Shown here piece after piece: positions 10,855 through 19,134 of a DNA stretch of 64,000 nucleotides (positions within the stretch are counted from its first letter, which is position 1; the number at the start of each line of letters is the position of its first letter). The stretch spans positions 23,014 to 87,013 of the forward strand of contig CALSCP010002399.1 in NCBI GenBank assembly GCA_943704425.1, written 5' to 3'. The position numbers were made by a program, and so were the translations under genes. Origin of the DNA: Ministeria vibrans ATCC 50519. Lineage: Eukaryota > Protista > Filasterea. Under the pieces are notes generated by a model. It did not search any database. It was not told the DNA's origin and saw nothing but the letters and a program-made list of their open reading frames with translations.

Positions 10855-12890
10855 ATGGCGTCACTGTTGCAGGATGGAATTGACTGGTACAAGGATGCCA
10901 TGACGAAGGGAGGTAACGAACGACGGAAGGAACGAACAAACGAAGGTCGTTGATGACTTTGCTGCTGTGCTGTGCGGGGGCACACGCCGAACCCTCGACC
11001 GTGCAGGCGGGGGTGCTCGCTGCAGCATATCCAAGGGCGCATTCTAACAGACGCGACTTGTCTCACTCTCTCACTTACTCACTCACTCTCTCTCTCTCTC
11101 GCGCGCGCCCTCCGCCAGATCCCCGTGTCGCCGACTGGTTCCTCATGCAGGAGTTCTACGTCACGTTTCTCATCTCCATCGGCTACTACCTGAGCATCCC
11201 TCTCGGCATGTGGATTATGAAGGGTAACCACCACTCATGGCCAACCCGATCACCTGAAATGATTTTTTTTTGGGGGTGTTGGGGATGTCCGTTTTTTGCT
11301 CACTGCTCTCCTCGTCTCGCCTCCCGCCCAGATCGCGCTCCACTTCACGTCAAGCCCCTGGCCGCCATCTACAACCTGGCCATGGTGTTTTTGTCGGCTT
11401 ACATGTTCTACGAGGTGAGCAGTGGTGAAAGAACGTGAATTTGTCACTTTGATGCCGCACGTGAAAATGACTATGCCGCCGCATTGCTGGCCACGGTCGC
11501 CGGGCGGGCCCACTATCACTGCAAAGCTGCTTAATCAAGCGCAACATGGCGGCTGTAGGCCTCGCCACGTCGCTTGATCGGTGTGTCGGGATTTGCGATC
11601 AATCTCAAGATCGCACACACACATTTCATTGTACATTATGATATAATTGTTATTATGACAAGTGCAATCGACCAACTCGCGTGGCACCTCACCCAGCCAA
11701 ACCCACACCGCGCTCATCAAAAACAAACGGTGTGCTCTTCCTCTCTTTAAAAACTTTTTGTTTTGTTTCGTCCTTCTTTGTGTGCAGATGTGGATTCCGA
11801 CGTTTGCTCTTGGCTGTCGATTCGAATCCATGTGCTGCCCCGTCGACTACTCAGACAATCCATATGCCATTCGCGTAGGGCAAAAAATGACTTGACAAGA
11901 AAATCAACTCATCTTATTATTGTGTGTGTGAACGTGTCTGAATGATGTGTGTGTTTTAGGCGGCCAAAGCAGTTTGGTGGTACTATTTCTCTAAAGCCAT
12001 TGAGTTTCTGGACACGTGGTTTATGATTGCGGGAAAGAAGTTCAACCAAGTCACGTTTCTCCACTGTTACCACCACGGTACAATCGCATAAGACACATAT
12101 TAGATGTTATGTGGTATTTGTGTTGTGCTTAGGAGTTGGTTTGTAGTTATTGTGCGTGTTTCATGCGTTACGTGTGTTGTGTAGTGTATGTGTTTATATG
12201 TTGGTGTTGTGTGATATGTGATCAGCATGCGGCATCATATGTGATAGAGCTAGAGAGTGACTGATGATTTGGGTCTTTTTCGAGTGATGTTGATTGACGT
12301 GCGTGTGTGGTAGGGACGATGTTGTCCATTTGGTGGATTGGGGCAAAGTATGTTGGCGGAGGAAACAGTGTTGTGCCCGCCGGAACCAACTGTTTTGTGT
12401 AAGAGATCAAACAAATGGAAAAGACACTCACGCAAAATATGACTGATTTTTTGTGTTGTGGTGCCTGTCTCTTAGTCATGTCGTGATGTATCTGTACTAC
12501 TTCCTGTCTGCCATTGGAGTGAGAGTCTGGTGGAAGAAATACGTCACTCAACTACAATTGGTACGAACGCACAGCACAAGCCCGTTGCTTTGAATCCTAG
12601 CCCTAGCCCTAATATCATAACCCAAACATGCCAACATGATCTCAACCCCAAACGAGCTTCTCACACCCACACCCACGTACGCACACACACTCTCTTCCCC
12701 TGCACAGGCTCAGTTCTTTATCATGCTTGGATTTGCCGTGACGGGCTTTGTCATCGACTGTGACTACCCCCGCTGGATGGCGTACGCCCTTGCCGCCTAC
12801 ATGCTCTCCCTCATCGTCCTCTTCATGAACTTCTACCGCCATGCCTACAACAAGAGCCAGGAAGAGAAGAAGAAGAAGAAGGCGCAGTAA
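10855..12890 (+). CDS. ELOVL: Very-long-chain fatty acid elongase (GNS1/SUR4 family)
   Basis: [62 protein letters not shown] and LFMNFY motifs across about 8 exons; C-terminal di-lysine ER signal. Confidence 0.95.
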
Positions 12891-12972
12891 ACTTCTTTGT
12901 TCATTTCATTTCAATTACTTCTTAAAACTCTTTTTAACGGCACTTTTATTAAAGCTGGCTCCAGTGATCCTG

Positions 12973-13005
<33 letters not shown>

Positions 13006-13321
13006 CAGCCAACCTGTCTCCGCTCCCTCTGACCCTCTCGACGCTTCCGTAGCTTAAAAAGTGGATCTGACCTGTTTGCGTTATCGCTTTTTTGTTTGTG
13101 ATTGATAAGTTGTTACTTTTATTGATAAAAAGGTCTATTTCTCTTTTCTATGTGTTTATGGGTGCTCCATCTTCTTGGGGCTAGCCTATAGCGAAAGTAT
13201 TGTGTTACTTTCATTGCATTATTTTTCATCTCCTGGCTAGGAGTAAATTTTTCCTTTCATTAACTTATTTTTTTTTCTTCTCTCCTTCTTCTCTCTTGCA
13301 CCAGTCGCCACCAGATCTTTA

Positions 13322-16300
13322 TCAGATTTCGTACGACTGCTGTGAGTGCTTTGAGTGCTGACACGGGAGAAACTCGCCGCTTAAGCAAACCTCTGCTGGA
13401 CCTTGATCATGCGAGTGCGTGAGGGAGTGGCGCCAAGTAGTGAACGGGCCCAACAGCGCAAAATTTGAGCCAGACAGGGCTTGCGGCTGCGGAGAATTCG
13501 AGCAGTCGACGGCGAGCTGGGTTGCGACAGGAGCATGCGAGAAGGCGTGCCACTGGCCTGTCTGTGGGTGCTGGAAGCGCGAAGCGAGGCCAGTGTGCTG
13601 GAGCATCAGGCGTGCGCCAGAGACACATGTGCCACTGCTGCTGTTGACAAAGCGGGCGCGGGCGTGGGTGACGCGCACATCGCAGCGATCACTGAGAAAC
13701 TCTTGCAGCTGCGGCGATAGCGGATCAAGCACTGTCATCGTAGACGTGGCATTTGCTGCGATCATGAAACAGAGTCCCGGGTCGACGAACCGCTGTGGGT
13801 ATCGGCCCTGTGCGTTCAAGCTTTTTGTGTTCGCCAAAATAATGCCACGATGGGCATTGGCGAGGTGAGCGACCGAGGTGAGCACGACGCGTGGGAGTTC
13901 CATTGGTGACACTAGCGACTGGTAACTGAGCGCACGTGCCTCTTTGTAGATGGCCCACGCGAGCTCGCGTTTCCAAAATGCCGTCACATGAGCAAGGAAC
14001 GCCTGACGATTTTGCAGAGGCACATTCATCGCGCTCTGCTTGCGATCCCACACCTCCAATTCCTGGTCCTCCAACACCAACTTCCGGTTCACATGCTCCT
14101 GACGTGTCTCCGCGAGCGAACGCTGCACATGCCGCGCCTGCTGCAATGCCCCATACAGAGCAGCCAGGCGCTTCTGCTGCGCCTCCACCGCCTTCACCGC
14201 CACCTTCAGGGGACCCTGCGCAATACCACTCGACACCGATTGTCGTCCTCCAATGCCCCACTTCTGCAGTTGATTGTCCATTGCAGATATTACCTTCTGC
14301 GTCTGCTTCGACGTCATAACCTTCTTCGGCAGCATCATCAGTCGCTCGAAATCTATCGACACATCGCCGCTCTTCAGCGCCGCGACTATCACATCATGAG
14401 TATTTTCCGATGCAAGTCCCTCGATCCGCTCAATTGTTTGCGCCACATCCTGGCGCGTTGCCACCACCGCATCTGCAAAGCTGTGTGCTGTGGCTAAGAT
14501 CCCCGCATCGGCGCTTTTCAGCAGCCGAATCGGCTCAGCAAAGTTTGCAGGCAGTGATGCAATTCTGAGTCCAATACGTGCAAGGTCCATGCCACCCTTG
14601 AGTACCACATTCGCAATAAACCGGAGGCCGATGCGTCTCCTTTTCGATGAGGCTCGTGCTGCCTCATTGCGCACGTCATCTTCCGCCCGCTGTGCCGCTG
14701 TCACGAGCTCAACCAACGCCTGCTTCCCGCGCTGCCATTCCAAAAGCAATCCGTCAATGCGTTGTTCAGCGCTCTTCATTGCAACGTCCAAATGCCCGAT
14801 CTCGCTGTTCAGATTGGTACGCGCTCGATCAATGGCCACCTCAGCCACCTTGGCTGTTGTGAGTCGTGTGGCCAAATCCGCCGTCTCGTCCCTCACAACC
14901 TGCAGTGCCTTCTCAAGTTCTGCGGCAAACTGGAGCTGCGGCTCAATTGCGTCGTGCAGCTGCTGCAACGACAGACGCTCGACGTACGTGAACGCGTCAC
15001 CAAACACATCGCAATCAAGACTGAGTCGCGCAAGGTAAAGCATTGTCGCATTGCGCACGTGCTTTGCCCACTCGGGCCGCGATCGTCCACCGCCGAGGTC
15101 GAGCACATGTAGCAGGTTCGTCAGCACGTGCGCCGCATTATCCAATCGATGTGCCAGAAACTCGCCGACTCCCACATTCAGCATGGCTCGCGCGTACTCA
15201 GGCCCGAGCGCCAATACAAGTTCACCCACGGGCGCGGTTGAATATGTTCCACTCTTACATACATGTGTGGCGCAGTTCTTGTTGCTACCACTAGCGCCTT
15301 GCGGTCCGTTTTTACCCTCAGGCTCTGTCCAACGCTGTACAGTGCACCGACGACGTCCTGTCCAGCGGCGGCGCCTCGGGCATTCCGATTCACGTGGGCG
15401 TCCAGTTCCTCCAGTTCCACCATGCCCACCTGAACCTTCATTGCCGCGGTTGCCAGGGCTTCCACAATCCATTGTCACCTTCAGAGCGTTTTCAGATTTG
15501 GCATGATCGCAGCGCAGTGACACCTTTCCACCTCTGCCACCACGTCCACCACAGCCGCCACTGCCACCGGTACCGCCCGCCAAACCGGGTTCCCCGGTCT
15601 CATTGGCTCCATCACGCCCAGTGCCGCCACGGCCGCCTTTCTGCCCATCGCTTCCATAGCCGCCACGAGCAAATACCTCCAGCGAGCTGGCACCCTCAAC
15701 ATCAAACTGCTCCGCTCGCAAGCTCACACTACCAGAATCTAGTCCCGCGTCGCCATCCTTGCCTGCACTCCCCGTCAGACCAATCTCTGTCGCGTCCGTC
15801 GCTGGTCCACTCCACGACACAACTGCCGTCTTTCCGTCCACGTTGATGGTCACGTTCGTTCCAGCGCGCAGAACCCGACAGGAGATATCGACGGATTGTC
15901 CTGGCAAATGCAGCAAAGTGTTCTCTTGTATCGTCACCGTGTCCGCGACAACGTGCAAGCCCTTCGCCGGGTTCACCATAGCCGGGGAGAGGTTTACGTC
16001 AATTCCAATTATGCGCGTTGTTGTCTCGTTGCTACTCAGCACAAACTCTGGGGTAGTGTCAGTCGGGGACATTTCGTCTGAGCTCTTCACGTCCTCCTTC
16101 AGGTCGTCCTCCATGCGTCGAAAGAAAGCCGCTCTCATTGCCACGAGCGCACGGTGGCAAGCCTCCTGGACCTGTGCCACGGCATCCACATACATCTGAT
16201 TGGTGGTGGGCACCTGCGTTGCCTCCATTAGACTGACTGCATCACGGCACTTCTCACCATGTGCCAGAATGAGGCTACCAAGGGCGTCTGGGAGAGTATA

Positions 16301-17428
16301 TGTGTCCTGCCACACCTGCATACCACTCGTAGCCTTGTCTTTGGCAGCGACGATTGCTGCTGCGTACACCGGTTGCCAGTCGAACATGCGTCCACCGTTG
16401 ACGCCGGTCACTACTGACCGCACCAAAGTCGCCCACTCATCCGGTGTAATCGCACGTCCGGATCCGCCGTTCAACTTGATATTCTTTATACGTCGGAAAA
16501 GACCCGACGTGAAGCGAGCAACGGCATGCGGATAGCCGCCAGGGATCTTGTTCAAGTCGTCAAGGGACACAGGCATGCTGCCGTTGACAAGCTTGCGGAA
16601 ATACCCACGGTGAGCAGGAGCAACAGTGGGCAAAACACGCAGCGTTGTGTGGGGAAACATCATGCGAAATGATGGTGACGGCTCGTTGCCAGGATACGCA
16701 AAGAATGTTTCGAGGTACTCGTTGCACTCAAACTCTGTCGTGTTGCATGCACCACCAGTCAGCAATTCCTCGCCATCGCGAAGGAGAAACTCGATGTGTG
16801 GCTCGTGACCAAGGAAACGCCTTGCGTCCTCTTCCGCATGGGTCTGCTGCAATGCGTGCTGCACCGCGCGCTCAAGATGCTCCATCTCGATTTGCGACAT
16901 TACTCCCCCTCGCACAATGAAAACTGTGTGCGAGGAGAGCGCAAGCACCGCCGCAGACATGCGATTGAGAAACTTTTCTGGACCTTGGCCGAATCCCTGA
17001 GTGTCGTAGGAGACAACAACTCCAGGTTCGCCATCAATACATGTACGATTCAAAACCATGGCAGCCACGCCCAAGGTGTGCGTAACGCCGCCGCCGGCTG
17101 TTTTCACCGGCGGCACAATAGCTGTGCCATTCGGTTCCAGGTTCAACAGGAGCCCCATAAGAATGGTGCTTTTTCCTGCCTTCGTGTGCGCCAATTGGGC
17201 GTTGGCGGAGATTGGTCCCGGCGAGGCTCCGTCGATGTGCATCGAGTCGGCAAACGAACTAATTGTGGTCTCATTGAGAACGAGCATGTTCTCCGAATCA
17301 CTCGACATAAGAGTCGTCATCGGGTGCAGAACAAGCTTACACTCAGAAGCAGTTAACCCCTTGGCACCAACGATGCCGTAAACCAGCGATGCAATGAGCA
17401 TCAGCAGCACTCTGCATGAAAAATTCAT
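13322..17428 (-). CDS. Secreted GBP-like GTPase fused to a Gly-rich linker and a putative pore-forming toxin module (1368 aa, intronless)
   Basis: Signal peptide, then GBP motifs AHTKAGKS, THTLGV, YDTQGFG, LALSSHTVF and FLLRD. GxxG repeats follow, then a coiled coil with an apolar hairpin, and a C-terminal beta domain (DVRVTH...LLGPFTTWR). Confidence 0.85.
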   Translation of the reverse strand: MNFSCRVLLMLIASLVYGIVGAKGLTASECKLVLHPMTTLMSSDSENMLVLNETTISSFADSMHIDGASPGPISANAQLAHTKAGKSTILMGLLLNLEPNGTAIVPPVKTAGGGVTHTLGVAAMVLNRTCIDGEPGVVVSYDTQGFGQGPEKFLNRMSAAVLALSSHTVFIVRGGVMSQIEMEHLERAVQHALQQTHAEEDARRFLGHEPHIEFLLRDGEELLTGGACNTTEFECNEYLETFFAYPGNEPSPSFRMMFPHTTLRVLPTVAPAHRGYFRKLVNGSMPVSLDDLNKIPGGYPHAVARFTSGLFRRIKNIKLNGGSGRAITPDEWATLVRSVVTGVNGGRMFDWQPVYAAAIVAAKDKATSGMQVWQDTYTLPDALGSLILAHGEKCRDAVSLMEATQVPTTNQMYVDAVAQVQEACHRALVAMRAAFFRRMEDDLKEDVKSSDEMSPTDTTPEFVLSSNETTTRIIGIDVNLSPAMVNPAKGLHVVADTVTIQENTLLHLPGQSVDISCRVLRAGTNVTINVDGKTAVVSWSGPATDATEIGLTGSAGKDGDAGLDSGSVSLRAEQFDVEGASSLEVFARGGYGSDGQKGGRGGTGRDGANETGEPGLAGGTGGSGGCGGRGGRGGKVSLRCDHAKSENALKVTMDCGSPGNRGNEGSGGHGGTGGTGRPRESECPRRRRWTGRRRCTVQRWTEPEGKNGPQGASGSNKNCATHVCKSGTYSTAPVGELVLALGPEYARAMLNVGVGEFLAHRLDNAAHVLTNLLHVLDLGGGRSRPEWAKHVRNATMLYLARLSLDCDVFGDAFTYVERLSLQQLHDAIEPQLQFAAELEKALQVVRDETADLATRLTTAKVAEVAIDRARTNLNSEIGHLDVAMKSAEQRIDGLLLEWQRGKQALVELVTAAQRAEDDVRNEAARASSKRRRIGLRFIANVVLKGGMDLARIGLRIASLPANFAEPIRLLKSADAGILATAHSFADAVVATRQDVAQTIERIEGLASENTHDVIVAALKSGDVSIDFERLMMLPKKVMTSKQTQKVISAMDNQLQKWGIGGRQSVSSGIAQGPLKVAVKAVEAQQKRLAALYGALQQARHVQRSLAETRQEHVNRKLVLEDQELEVWDRKQSAMNVPLQNRQAFLAHVTAFWKRELAWAIYKEARALSYQSLVSPMELPRVVLTSVAHLANAHRGIILANTKSLNAQGRYPQRFVDPGLCFMIAANATSTMTVLDPLSPQLQEFLSDRCDVRVTHARARFVNSSSGTCVSGARLMLQHTGLASRFQHPQTGQWHAFSHAPVATQLAVDCSNSPQPQALSGSNFALLGPFTTWRHSLTHSHDQGPAEVCLSGEFLPCQHSKHSQQSYEI

Positions 17429-18380
17429 AAAAGCGACGAAGAAATTAATTTAGCCAAAAAGCGCGCACTCGATCTTGCCAGACAGAGCAGTATGTTAGTC
17501 GTTACCTGTTGCGATGCGGCGTGACCAGGTTTATCATGGTGAGTTGGAGCCACCGGAGTGAGTGAAGTGATGAAGTGTATGAATTTGAATGAATGATTTT
17601 CGAGTCGGGAGTCGTGACATGAAATTAAAGTTCACTTTTGAAGGACGTAAAAAATCTTCAAAAAATCCTGTCGGAATAAATCACCGAATTTCTCGTGTGG
17701 TTCTCGCCTCCAGCTCCCAGCACAACGTGGAAATTTTTATGTTTGCCTTTGTGTGCAGGTTCAGGTAGACTGAGGCAGCGGGAGGGAAGTTCGTGCACTG
17801 CAAGGGCGTGTTTTGGAAGCGGGTGGTTGAACGTGGAAGTTTGGAAACGGGTGATTGAACGAGGGTTGAACTCATATACTGAAGCGCTTGAGTGTTAGGA
17901 AATAGGAGCTGAGTTGTGCACGCCACGAGCGACGAGGCTGGCGGTGAAACGGGAAACCCCACGGTAAGAGACTAAGAGTTGAAATGTTACAGTTGCAGTA
18001 GTCAAACAGTCGAGGAATTTTTTCTGTCGAAACTCACTCGAAAGTGTCCAGTCAACTATTTTCTTTCTCCTCTCCAACCGCCCAACTCCTCTTCTATCCT
18101 CTCTAAACCAGTAAGTCTTCTACGTAGCTATAGAGCATCTCTTCCAAGTGTCTTTGTTCCACTTTGACCCTCCTCCGAACTTTCTCCGCAACTACAACAG
18201 GGGGGCAATGTGAAGCTTTAAACTCTATGAGAAAAGAGCCTAAATTGGCTGACGATTGGAATTTTATGCTGGTATTCCAGGCGGCATCGGATAACTACAG
18301 AAGCACAGCTACTCACCGTAAACACCGGATATTGAGGATAAATACAAGCTTCTTCGTTCTTTCACTTTCACTTTCACACT

Positions 18381-19134
18381 TTATACAAATGTCTGCTTGA
18401 GTTGAGCCATGAAACTGTCGTTGGGCTGTGCCAGGGGGCGTTTGGCTTGGATGTGTGCAAGGGCGGCATCGACGGTGGGGCTGTGGCCGGAGTGGACGAG
18501 GAAGGCGACGAGGACGGTCGTGCTGCGCGACCGCCCCTGCGCGCAGTGCACAAGCACACGGGCTGGCGGCGACTGTGCGCGCAGTCGCGCAAGGTGCTCG
18601 ACGCCTTCGTGGACAAAGGCGTCGATCCTTTGCTCGTGGCTGTCGTCTGCGTCCACCACAATGTGCTGATTGTCCGCAATGATCTTCTGCTCAATTACTT
18701 TCGCCATTCCCGAACCAAACTTGGGCAGGAACTTCTCGAGAGTGCGCGCCACCGTCACCACTGCGGATATGTTGTTGTCGTGCAGAAAGCGGCCGTTGAT
18801 GGCAGCTGCAGGATGCGGCAAAGAGACATGGGACACACTTGGTCAACACTGCAACACAACTGAACTTGTCACCTTTGAAGCCACCCAGAAAAAGGCCCGG
18901 TATGATCTCCTATGTTGTGTGCAGGTGGTCAGGGAGTCTCTCTTCTACCATCCCCTGCGTAACCTGTGCCACGCCGTCGTCTTGGGAGGTGAGGGCAGCG
19001 AGTGCATCGGCGTCGCTCACCGCCGAATGGTGCAGCCACGGACGCATGCAGTGTGCGCACGAATGGCGCTTGAACGCATTGGGAGAGAATCCAGGACACC
19101 CCTCGGGGTTGCTGCTGGCCAGCGTATACTGCAT
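18381..19134 (-). CDS. Dual-specificity phosphatase with an N-terminal Cys/His module
   Basis: Spliced EIIPGLFLGGFKAA, catalytic VLVHCAQGRSRS and KRPLAQPNDSFMAQL. N-terminal CPGFSPNAFKRHSCAHCMRPWLHH. Confidence 0.9.

Follow-up and report, generated by a model that had tools for sequence, protein, structure and literature searches.

We analysed a 64,000-nucleotide stretch of the genome of the filasterean Ministeria vibrans ATCC 50519 (GenBank assembly GCA_943704425.1, contig CALSCP010002399.1, positions 23,014–87,013; hereafter the window) and concentrated on one gene on its minus strand, to which all features described below belong unless another strand or contig is named. An open reading frame (ORF) of 1368 codons runs without interruption over positions 13322–17428, and this 4.1-kb frame, described in an initial annotation of the window, is real. 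The motifs quoted from it were all recovered, namely AHTKAGKS at residue 80, THTLGV, DTQG at residue 142, FLLRD at residue 214 and FRMMFP, followed by the module motifs DVFG..YVERLS, RALSY, DVRVTH and LLGPFTTWR (residue numbers refer to this ORF throughout). We propose that the encoded protein comprises five parts: a cleavable signal peptide, a GTPase-like domain of ~430 residues, a β-segment with a polyproline-II (PPII) bundle, a helical hairpin with an apolar tip, and a C-terminal β-domain. The last three parts form a module of ~900 residues that was probably acquired from bacteria. Such a protein would present a new architecture built from known kinds of domain, a dynamin-superfamily GTPase-like domain joined to a Tc-like α-pore-forming module.

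Contigs from four public sequencing runs were aligned to positions 12700–18400 (5701 letters). Run X1 was taken as RNA-derived because some of its contigs are spliced and a poly(A) tail is present, X5 comes from the metatranscriptome of seawater and X7 from DNA. A single X1 contig of 4165 nt covers 13268–17411, with one mismatch, and then resumes at 17506–17526. The same 94-nt skip, 17412–17505, was found in X5, which contributed six contigs that are each at least 99% identical to the window, and a DNA contig from X7 is contiguous over 13380–18400. The skipped segment begins and ends with CT..AC on the plus strand, that is GT..AG on the minus strand, and is a spliceosomal intron in phase 2. 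The gene had been called intronless, with a start at ATG 17428–17426. Both statements are wrong, since RNA contigs of two independent studies skip the intron and the supposed start codon falls within it, so that the first 5 2/3 codons of the earlier translation (MNFSC and two bases of R) are swallowed.

The upstream exon (exon 1, 17506–17537) begins at an ATG (17537–17535, context caccATGa), contributes the first 10 2/3 codons (MINLVTPHRN and two bases of R) and joins exon 2 in frame through an arginine codon split as AG/A. The spliced N-terminus reads MINLVTPHRNR-VLLMLIASLVYGIVGA and continues with KG, giving a protein of 1373 residues. Translation probably starts at ATG 17537; its use is a prediction, since the RNA contigs end at 17526 and 17535. 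A later transcription start would place the first AUG such that a very short N-terminus, MLIASLVYGIVGA, results, and the hydrophobic core is retained with either start codon. Upstream of exon 1, a minus-strand X1 RNA contig at 17636–17950 (depth 4.6) could be a longer 5' untranslated region (UTR), an upstream exon or another transcript, and because of this low-depth contig the transcription start of the gene is not fixed. Exon 2 (13322–17411) is a single 4.09-kb coding exon that includes the stop codon (13322–13324), and the 3' UTR extends over 13268–13321, as far as the X1 contig reaches. Searches were performed with exon 2, and the exons were joined once, by script, for the frame check and the reading of the N-terminus.

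The spliced RNA contigs and the spliceosomal intron establish this as a genuine eukaryotic gene, spliced and transcribed, and the X1 and X5 contigs indicate that it is expressed both in culture-type samples and in the sea. Both halves of the protein are encoded on the one 4165-nt X1 contig, which is evidence of the kind that the initial annotation had called for to show a single mRNA and contradicts its concern that the halves might be joined only in the assembly. A coding exon of 4.09 kb is unusual for this intron-dense genome, in which the G domain of its own Sey1/RHD3 is spread over five exons within ~1.1 kb. The assembly totals 29.7 Mb in 2860 contigs, and the contig carrying the window is longer than 87 kb. 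In an exact look-up against a collection of 15 billion proteins, the window protein, three neighbouring ORFs and the paralogue described below were all absent.

The N-terminal segment is the sole strongly hydrophobic stretch of the protein (KD19 of 2.05, against a cut-off of KD19 > 1.3). A basic n-region (H, R, R) from exon 1 precedes a hydrophobic core of 16 residues, which is followed by V-G-A. The core and c-region (VLLMLIASLVYGIVGA, then KG) are encoded at 17363–17411, and the small residues at positions -3 and -1 predict cleavage after V-G-A. Thus, the secretory-type hydrophobic N-terminus noticed earlier is present, although the first residues then assigned to it were misread from the intron. 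N-x-S/T sequons, previously described as many, are enriched, with 13 compared to 6.8 ± 2.4 in shuffled sequences (p about 0.015), and the protein contains 22 Cys residues. From these features we infer entry into the secretory pathway. Whether the hydrophobic segment is a cleaved signal peptide or an anchor, most of the protein should be exposed to the lumen or to the exterior.

The anchor is the alternative that fares best. Here the segment would be an uncleaved signal anchor, and the product, a type II membrane protein, would reside at the cell surface or in an endomembrane (phagosome, extrusome or vacuole) and act in place rather than as a freely secreted toxin. The basic n-region in front of the 16-residue core suits the N-in orientation equally well, cleavage at V-G-A is predicted from the residues, and a start downstream of ATG 17537 would leave only the very short N-terminus given above. 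We nevertheless regard an anchor as the less probable outcome, as small uncharged residues at -3 and -1 directly behind the core suit a cleavage site and an A-R-A site is found at the corresponding position of the paralogue. An anchor would alter the location only, leaving the nature of the domains unchanged.

Behind this segment, the N-terminal ~430 residues are most likely a very divergent G domain of the GB1/RHD3 type (GBP/atlastin-like) with a helical extension, judged by their motifs. The G domain would span residues ~45–300 (16529–17296), with G1 (AHTKAGKS) encoded at 17168–17191, G3 (DTQG) at 16994–17005 and an RD-type G4 (FLLRD) at 16775–16789. The region that follows, residues ~301–470 (16019–16528), is mostly helical in a low-confidence AlphaFold2 (AF2) model, the only source of these helices, and is a possible GBP-like middle domain. 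G1, G2 and G3 occur in canonical order and spacing (residue 80, THTLG at ~115, and residue 142), and [NT]KxD is absent from residues 1–480. The set G1 AxxxxGKS, G2 T, G3 DTxG and a G4 of the RD type instead of NKxD is shared with the GBP, atlastin and Sey1/RHD3 proteins. An ordered pattern comprising an [AG]x4GK[ST] P-loop, Thr, a DxxG preceded by a strand and a G4 of the RD type, with a spacing similar to that of GBP, was reached by 2 of 300,000 shuffled sequences; this pattern was set after the sequence had been seen, but from textbook definitions of the motifs. The motifs that contact nucleotide are all intact, and the P-loop carries K in place of the R of GBP and atlastin.

We compared the domain to two Pfam-verified GBP domains, L021 from the same genome and L040 from a genome sampled as Gammaproteobacteria. 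In a three-way alignment G1, G2, G3 and G4 fall in shared columns, FLLRD aligning with WVVRD of a verified domain, and so do the GBP-specific pre-P-loop (LVLNxxT), LSS and FP elements. The identity to these two domains is 21–23%, compared to 29% between the two. Profile comparison by hhalign against the pair gave a probability of 37.5% (E 3.5e-4) over 44 columns that cover the pre-P-loop and P-loop, and a hidden Markov model (HMM) built from the two sequences scored 6.7 bits on the real sequence, a value reached by 2 of 3000 shuffles (empirical p about 1e-3). ESM-Atlas features of residues 25–470 pointed to GBP/RHD3 clusters (0.92, 190 of 256 features shared), and the ten best named matches all belong to that clan.

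Several searches count against this assignment. The Pfam models PF02263 (GBP) and PF05879 (RHD3_GTPase) gave no match by hmmscan even at E ≤ 10, and in six-frame scans of the genome the same models match GBP and Sey1 genes elsewhere but not this locus. Neither GBP nor atlastin was returned by phmmer against PDB sequences, and BLASTP against genuine GBP domains was not significant. Single-sequence AF2 modelling of the domain failed (pLDDT 36) and gave no fold match in Foldseek. No homologue of the domain was found in metagenomes, in viral contigs or in its own genome, and a GBP alignment (A7) also found nothing in the viral contigs. A word-indexed homologue search with the domain, or with family profile A2 of the C-terminal module, came back blank, a result that is uninformative because known members were also missed. 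Among 401 sampled Gammaproteobacteria there was one GBP-domain match and one true member of the module family, so that neither half has a deep alignment. The alignment to GBP1 and atlastin proposed initially therefore stands as far as the register of the G motifs and the agreeing ESM features go, and is not supported at the level of Pfam membership.

The N-terminal ~430 residues might instead be another P-loop NTPase, or a degenerate scaffold that works independently of nucleotide, with GBP-like motifs that are partly coincidental. The failed profile and sequence searches and the failed model would be explained, the 44 columns of the hhalign match all lie around the P-loop, the motif test was set up in hindsight, and a GTPase is odd in a lumenal or extracellular setting. 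We consider this unlikely, as the four G motifs and the pre-P-loop, LSS and FP elements occupy the same columns as in the two verified domains at an identity not far from their own, the Atlas matches converge on one clan, both shuffle tests speak for the G domain, and every nucleotide-contacting motif is preserved. On this evidence a divergent GB1/RHD3-type G domain is the probable identity. Its setting differs from that of its presumed relatives: GBP is cytosolic and atlastin and Sey1 face the cytosol, whereas this domain lies behind a signal peptide and is fused to a toxin-like module.

Of the two verified domains, the first is the clearest PF02263 GBP domain of the genome (E 2e-10). It is part of an open frame of 1070 codons on the minus strand of another contig (G000:C2596, L021:1891–5100) together with thrombospondin type-1 repeats (TSP1_ADAMTS, E 2e-12), which are extracellular modules. 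If this open frame is read correctly, the placement of GBP-type domains in extracellular contexts may thus be more widespread in Ministeria vibrans. The second domain (L040:1405–2142, on G057:C244; E 8e-33) follows a signal-peptide-like N-terminus that begins MLSVFLLIACAAAAASAG, and would be a second case of a signal peptide in front of a GBP domain. Its ORF breaks off and the similarity seems to continue in another frame; L040 may be a eukaryotic contig inside a bacterial metagenome-assembled genome (MAG).

Next, we explored the relatives of the C-terminal module. A homologue search with the whole protein returned one relative at E 2.6e-13, P0001 (MDR0207684.1), a hypothetical protein of 931 residues encoded in a Pseudomonas putida MAG, to which the BLASTP alignment spans residues 798–1332 and includes DV[FY]G..YV and GPFTTW. 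With residues 745–1368 as query, HMMER run exhaustively over 1.84 billion representatives added two weak matches, P0002 and P0003 (964 and 1011 residues). Pattern and profile searches added a 936-residue ORF in Desulfoluna spongiiphila AA1 (L013) and a partial gene in Pseudomonas UBA11273 (L012), and a profile of five members matched these two loci at 1e-63 (Desulfoluna) and 3e-159 (Pseudomonas). These proteins form a family of bacterial stand-alone proteins of 930–1010 residues. The window protein shares 16–26% identity with them and is a true member, since all members are collinear with residues 471–1368 in alignments A1 and A4. The common order is an N-terminal β-segment (ADTV..LPG..R..IDVSG), GGxGG repeats, DxYG..YVPLVSY, ~450 residues of coiled coil and a β-domain ending PFTTW..NPGLDLS; a six-sequence alignment shows no variation at the P, F and T of PFTTW. 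The bacterial members lack both the signal peptide and the N-terminal GTPase-like domain. They lie isolated among housekeeping genes, with no Tc B/C, toxin or secretion genes nearby, and they are rare, with a true member in 1 of the 401 Gammaproteobacteria. Scans of the whole protein and its parts with Pfam, NCBIfam and PADLOC gave no meaningful match, phmmer and hmmsearch against PDB sequences returned coiled-coil noise only, and alignment A3 found nothing in metagenomes.

We used AF2 with the eight-sequence alignment A4, without templates and without TcA sequences, to explore the structure of the module. Its β-rich start, with the motif ADTV..LPG..V.I..R (residues 471–536, 15821–16018), is conserved in A1 and A4 and is the best-modelled part (pLDDT 70–84). 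The GGxGGxG repeats that follow (residues ~537–720, 15269–15820) contain 25% Gly with invariant Gly columns and are predicted to form a bundle of PPII helices. Structural comparison by VIA placed model residues 67–250 on the snow-flea antifreeze proteins (2pne_A and 3bog_A, Z 11.4, root-mean-square deviation (rmsd) of 1.7–1.8 Å, 79 of 81 residues) and on 7jjv (Z 10–10.6). The antifreeze match is driven by composition (Gly-X-X) but is geometrically tight. The local fold is thus predicted to be shared with the snow-flea and springtail antifreeze bundles, here as one domain within a protein of 1373 residues and with no evidence of ice binding. We propose that this region is probably a rigid PPII bundle that serves as a spacer or oligomerisation element. 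Within it lies a polybasic loop bracketed by Cys residues, CPRRRRWTGRRRC (residues 683–695, 15344–15382; pLDDT <50). P0002 and P0006 carry a Cys-bracketed basic loop at the same place in the alignment and the other members do not. The loop is a possible proteolytic activation site of the furin/kexin type.

The remainder of the module resembles the C-terminal part of the TcA subunits. Foldseek against the PDB placed TcA subunits in each of the 21 best-ranked of the matches listed (E 6e-10 to 1.5e-6, probability 1.00), among them YenA2, TcdA1, XptA1/2, TcdA4 and TcaA-TcaB in prepore and pore states, with dynein stalks as the next family from E 2e-4. We used the published domain layout of TcA (PMC11435725) to place the channel and the TcB-binding domain at TcdA1 residues 1996–2516. 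VIA aligned model residues 264–886 with exactly this range, to the last residue of TcdA1 (Z 9.2, rmsd of 5.5–5.8 Å, 251–252 residues aligned), and the equivalent C-terminal range was matched in XptA1, TcdA4, YenA2 and TcaA-TcaB. The corresponding parts of the window protein are an antiparallel α-helical hairpin region (residues ~734–1210, 13799–15229) and a C-terminal β-domain (residues ~1211–1356, 13361–13798) that contains the motif (L/S)(G/S)PFTTW. In a profile comparison, hhalign of the family against six TcA C-termini gave a single match, which places the C-terminal β-domain on the TcB-binding part of PF18276 (E 0.008) with Y..L.PF...W aligned to RYLPFEG....W in the same register.

An apolar or amphipathic element is found at the tip of the hairpin (residues ~928–990, 14459–14647; pLDDT <50). 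When the N-terminus is set aside, six of the eight family members have their most hydrophobic 17-mer in the same alignment column, at the hairpin turn. TcA has its membrane-piercing loops at the hairpin turn. The apolar hairpin and the likeness to the C-terminus of Tc toxin A, both suggested in the initial annotation, are thus borne out by this conserved element and by the collinear fold match, and we propose from the models that residues ~734–1356 share the fold of the TcA translocation channel and TcB-binding domain. A real relationship is favoured because TcA alone heads the Foldseek list, the match extends over the β-domain and it is collinear to the exact C-terminus.

The fold assignment has clear weaknesses. 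The mean pLDDT of the module model is 56, falling from the N-terminal β/Gly part to ~55–78 in most helices and <50 in the hairpin tip and parts of the β-domain. TM-scores to TcA are about 0.18, and the VIA Z of 9.2 is below the ~13 that chance can produce in models with long helices. Over the hairpin alone, generic coiled coils score higher than TcA, and they dominate a wide search. PF18276 (TcA_TcB_BD) is silent in 8 of 8 family members at E ≤ 1 and in the genome at E ≤ 10, the family profile recovers coiled-coil noise and no TcA from the PDB, and the hhalign match carries a probability of 4.9%. In the window protein itself the tip 17-mer ranks third and is moderately apolar (KD 1.10).

These weaknesses would be accounted for if the module were a non-lytic structural, adhesive or surface protein acting outside the cell, combining a coiled-coil stalk with a PPII bundle and a β-domain, for which the TcA match is generic and implies no shared pore mechanism. 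Dynein stalk, SMC, EnvC and PcsB all score above TcA over the hairpin (Z 10–12.5 compared to 9.2), the bacterial members have no toxin or secretion neighbours, one source labels P0002 'CwlO-like', and no Pfam or PDB sequence link to TcA is found. However, the coiled-coil matches are confined to model residues 376–669, whereas the TcA match is collinear over 264–886 for all TcA homologues, and the 21 TcA chains precede the next Foldseek family by five orders of magnitude. The hhalign placement of the β-domain and the hydrophobic maximum at the hairpin tip also speak for TcA. We therefore give a purely structural role only a minor share of the probability, and retain the TcA-like channel.

The resemblance is to one part of TcA. 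Both proteins are predicted to have a long antiparallel hairpin with an apolar element at its tip, followed by a C-terminal β-domain, and only the last ~520 residues of TcA align. The window protein lacks the ~2000 residues of TcA that form the shell, receptor-binding and neuraminidase-like domains, and instead has the GTPase-like domain, the β-segment and the PPII bundle upstream of its channel-like part. It differs further in being eukaryotic, with a signal peptide and an intron, and in standing outside PF18276 by sequence. No gene for a TcB, TcC or RHS partner (PF12256, PF05593) was detected in the 29.7-Mb assembly, which is fragmented, so that the absence is not proven, and none was found beside the bacterial homologues. 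A complete Tc A-B-C system was rejected on the grounds that TcB/TcC/RHS genes were not found and that PF18276 is silent. The window protein would at best work like a TcA channel and is not a Tc toxin, and with no TcB/TcC genes found a stand-alone pore former is our best guess. Pseudomonas sp. UBA11273 carries a member of the module family on one contig (C215, L012/L014) and a TcA_TcB_BD gene (E 2.7e-79) on another (C174, L032), which indicates that the module family and TcA coexist and are distinct.

The genome contains further copies of the module, found in the search for paralogues proposed at the outset. One is intact, a 961-residue open frame on the minus strand of another contig (G000:C1787, L003:1344–4229) with a probable ATG 23 codons in. 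Its signal-peptide-like N-terminus, with the A-R-A site, stands directly before the module with no GTPase-like domain, and at ~20% identity this paralogue is as far from the window gene as the bacterial members are. Just upstream of its probable ATG lies an acceptor-like site, tttcag. One or two other copies are fragmentary (G000:C2362:56682–57805, L043, and G000:C2782:52–334, L044); the C2362 copy has stop codons inside its matches (one TGA, two TAG) and short ORFs only, and is either split by introns or decayed. Comparison of the stand-alone bacterial proteins, the paralogue with a signal peptide only and the window protein suggests that the module is the ancestral unit and that it is probably of bacterial origin. 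In the window gene only, the GTPase-like domain was probably inserted behind the signal peptide and ahead of the module.

That the fusion is instead an assembly artefact or bacterial contamination, as the bacterial kinship of the module and the atypically long exon might suggest, is extremely improbable and was rejected, since the X7 DNA contig spans 13380–18400, RNA contigs of two further studies contain both halves and the spliceosomal intron, the neighbouring genes are spliced and the contig exceeds 87 kb.

We also considered the fern insecticidal proteins IPD083/PtIP-83, to which the initial annotation had compared the C-terminal half by the order of its motifs. None of the homologue searches returned a fern protein. 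IPD083 has 867 residues and no known domains (PMC6669613), a size similar to that of the stand-alone module, and both are without Pfam domains; this comparison is by description only. No structure or mode of action of IPD083/PtIP-83 was reported in the literature that we found. Literature searches also turned up neither a stand-alone TcA-channel family nor a fusion of GBP with a toxin, which is weak evidence of novelty.

Other transcripts border the gene. A neighbour on the plus strand has a 90-nt GT..AG intron (18110–18201) that is spliced in X1 at higher depth than the gene studied here, and a poly(A) loose end at 12914 indicates another transcript end just downstream of the gene.

Taking these parts together, we marginally favour a protein of ~1373 residues in the secretory pathway, in which a GTPase-like domain is joined to a TcA-channel-like module that acts as a pore former. 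Once secreted, or delivered into the lumen of a compartment (a phagosome, for example), the module would oligomerise through its helical hairpins. TcA forms pentamers. The apolar hairpin tips would then insert into the target membrane to form an α-helical pore. The GTPase-like, β and PPII domains would stand in place of the TcA shell and receptor-binding domains, and because they occupy that position we propose that they target, regulate or gate the pore rather than pass through it as cargo. The GTPase-like domain may drive or control the oligomerisation. Secretion, oligomerisation, pore formation, nucleotide binding and the biological target are proposals, as is the 'new effector system' of the initial annotation. 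Two further points weigh against a GTPase-bearing pore former: there is no obvious supply of GTP outside the cytosol, and we know of no activity for any member of the module family. A phagosome-like lumen, or a role as a scaffold that does not need nucleotide, would be alternatives for the GTPase-like domain.

A more specific form of this proposal is a self-contained, secreted α-pore-forming weapon, in which a nucleotide-driven, oligomerising GTPase of the GBP/atlastin class is mounted on a bacterial TcA-like channel, replaces the TcA shell and controls assembly or the firing from prepore to pore. The protein would then represent an unknown class of GTPase-gated pore-forming effector that operates in the secretory or phagosomal lumen or outside the cell. 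We regard this as a speculative reading and do not expect it to be the right one.

If the fold holds, the TcA channel would be a portable module of ~900 residues that occurs independently of Tc complexes in bacteria and, following its transfer, in a eukaryote, and an orphan family would gain a name and a testable function. If the kinship with IPD083 suggested in the initial annotation were true, the same work could explain the action of commercial insecticidal proteins. The known GTPases of the GBP/atlastin type work in the cytosol, in immunity or in membrane fusion. A GBP-like domain that follows a signal peptide would challenge this cytosol-only view, and if the GTPase-gated pore were true, GTPases of the GBP type could act on the non-cytosolic side of a membrane. 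The gene, expressed in culture and also represented in a metatranscriptome from seawater, may matter in predator-prey or microbe-microbe interactions of the marine plankton.

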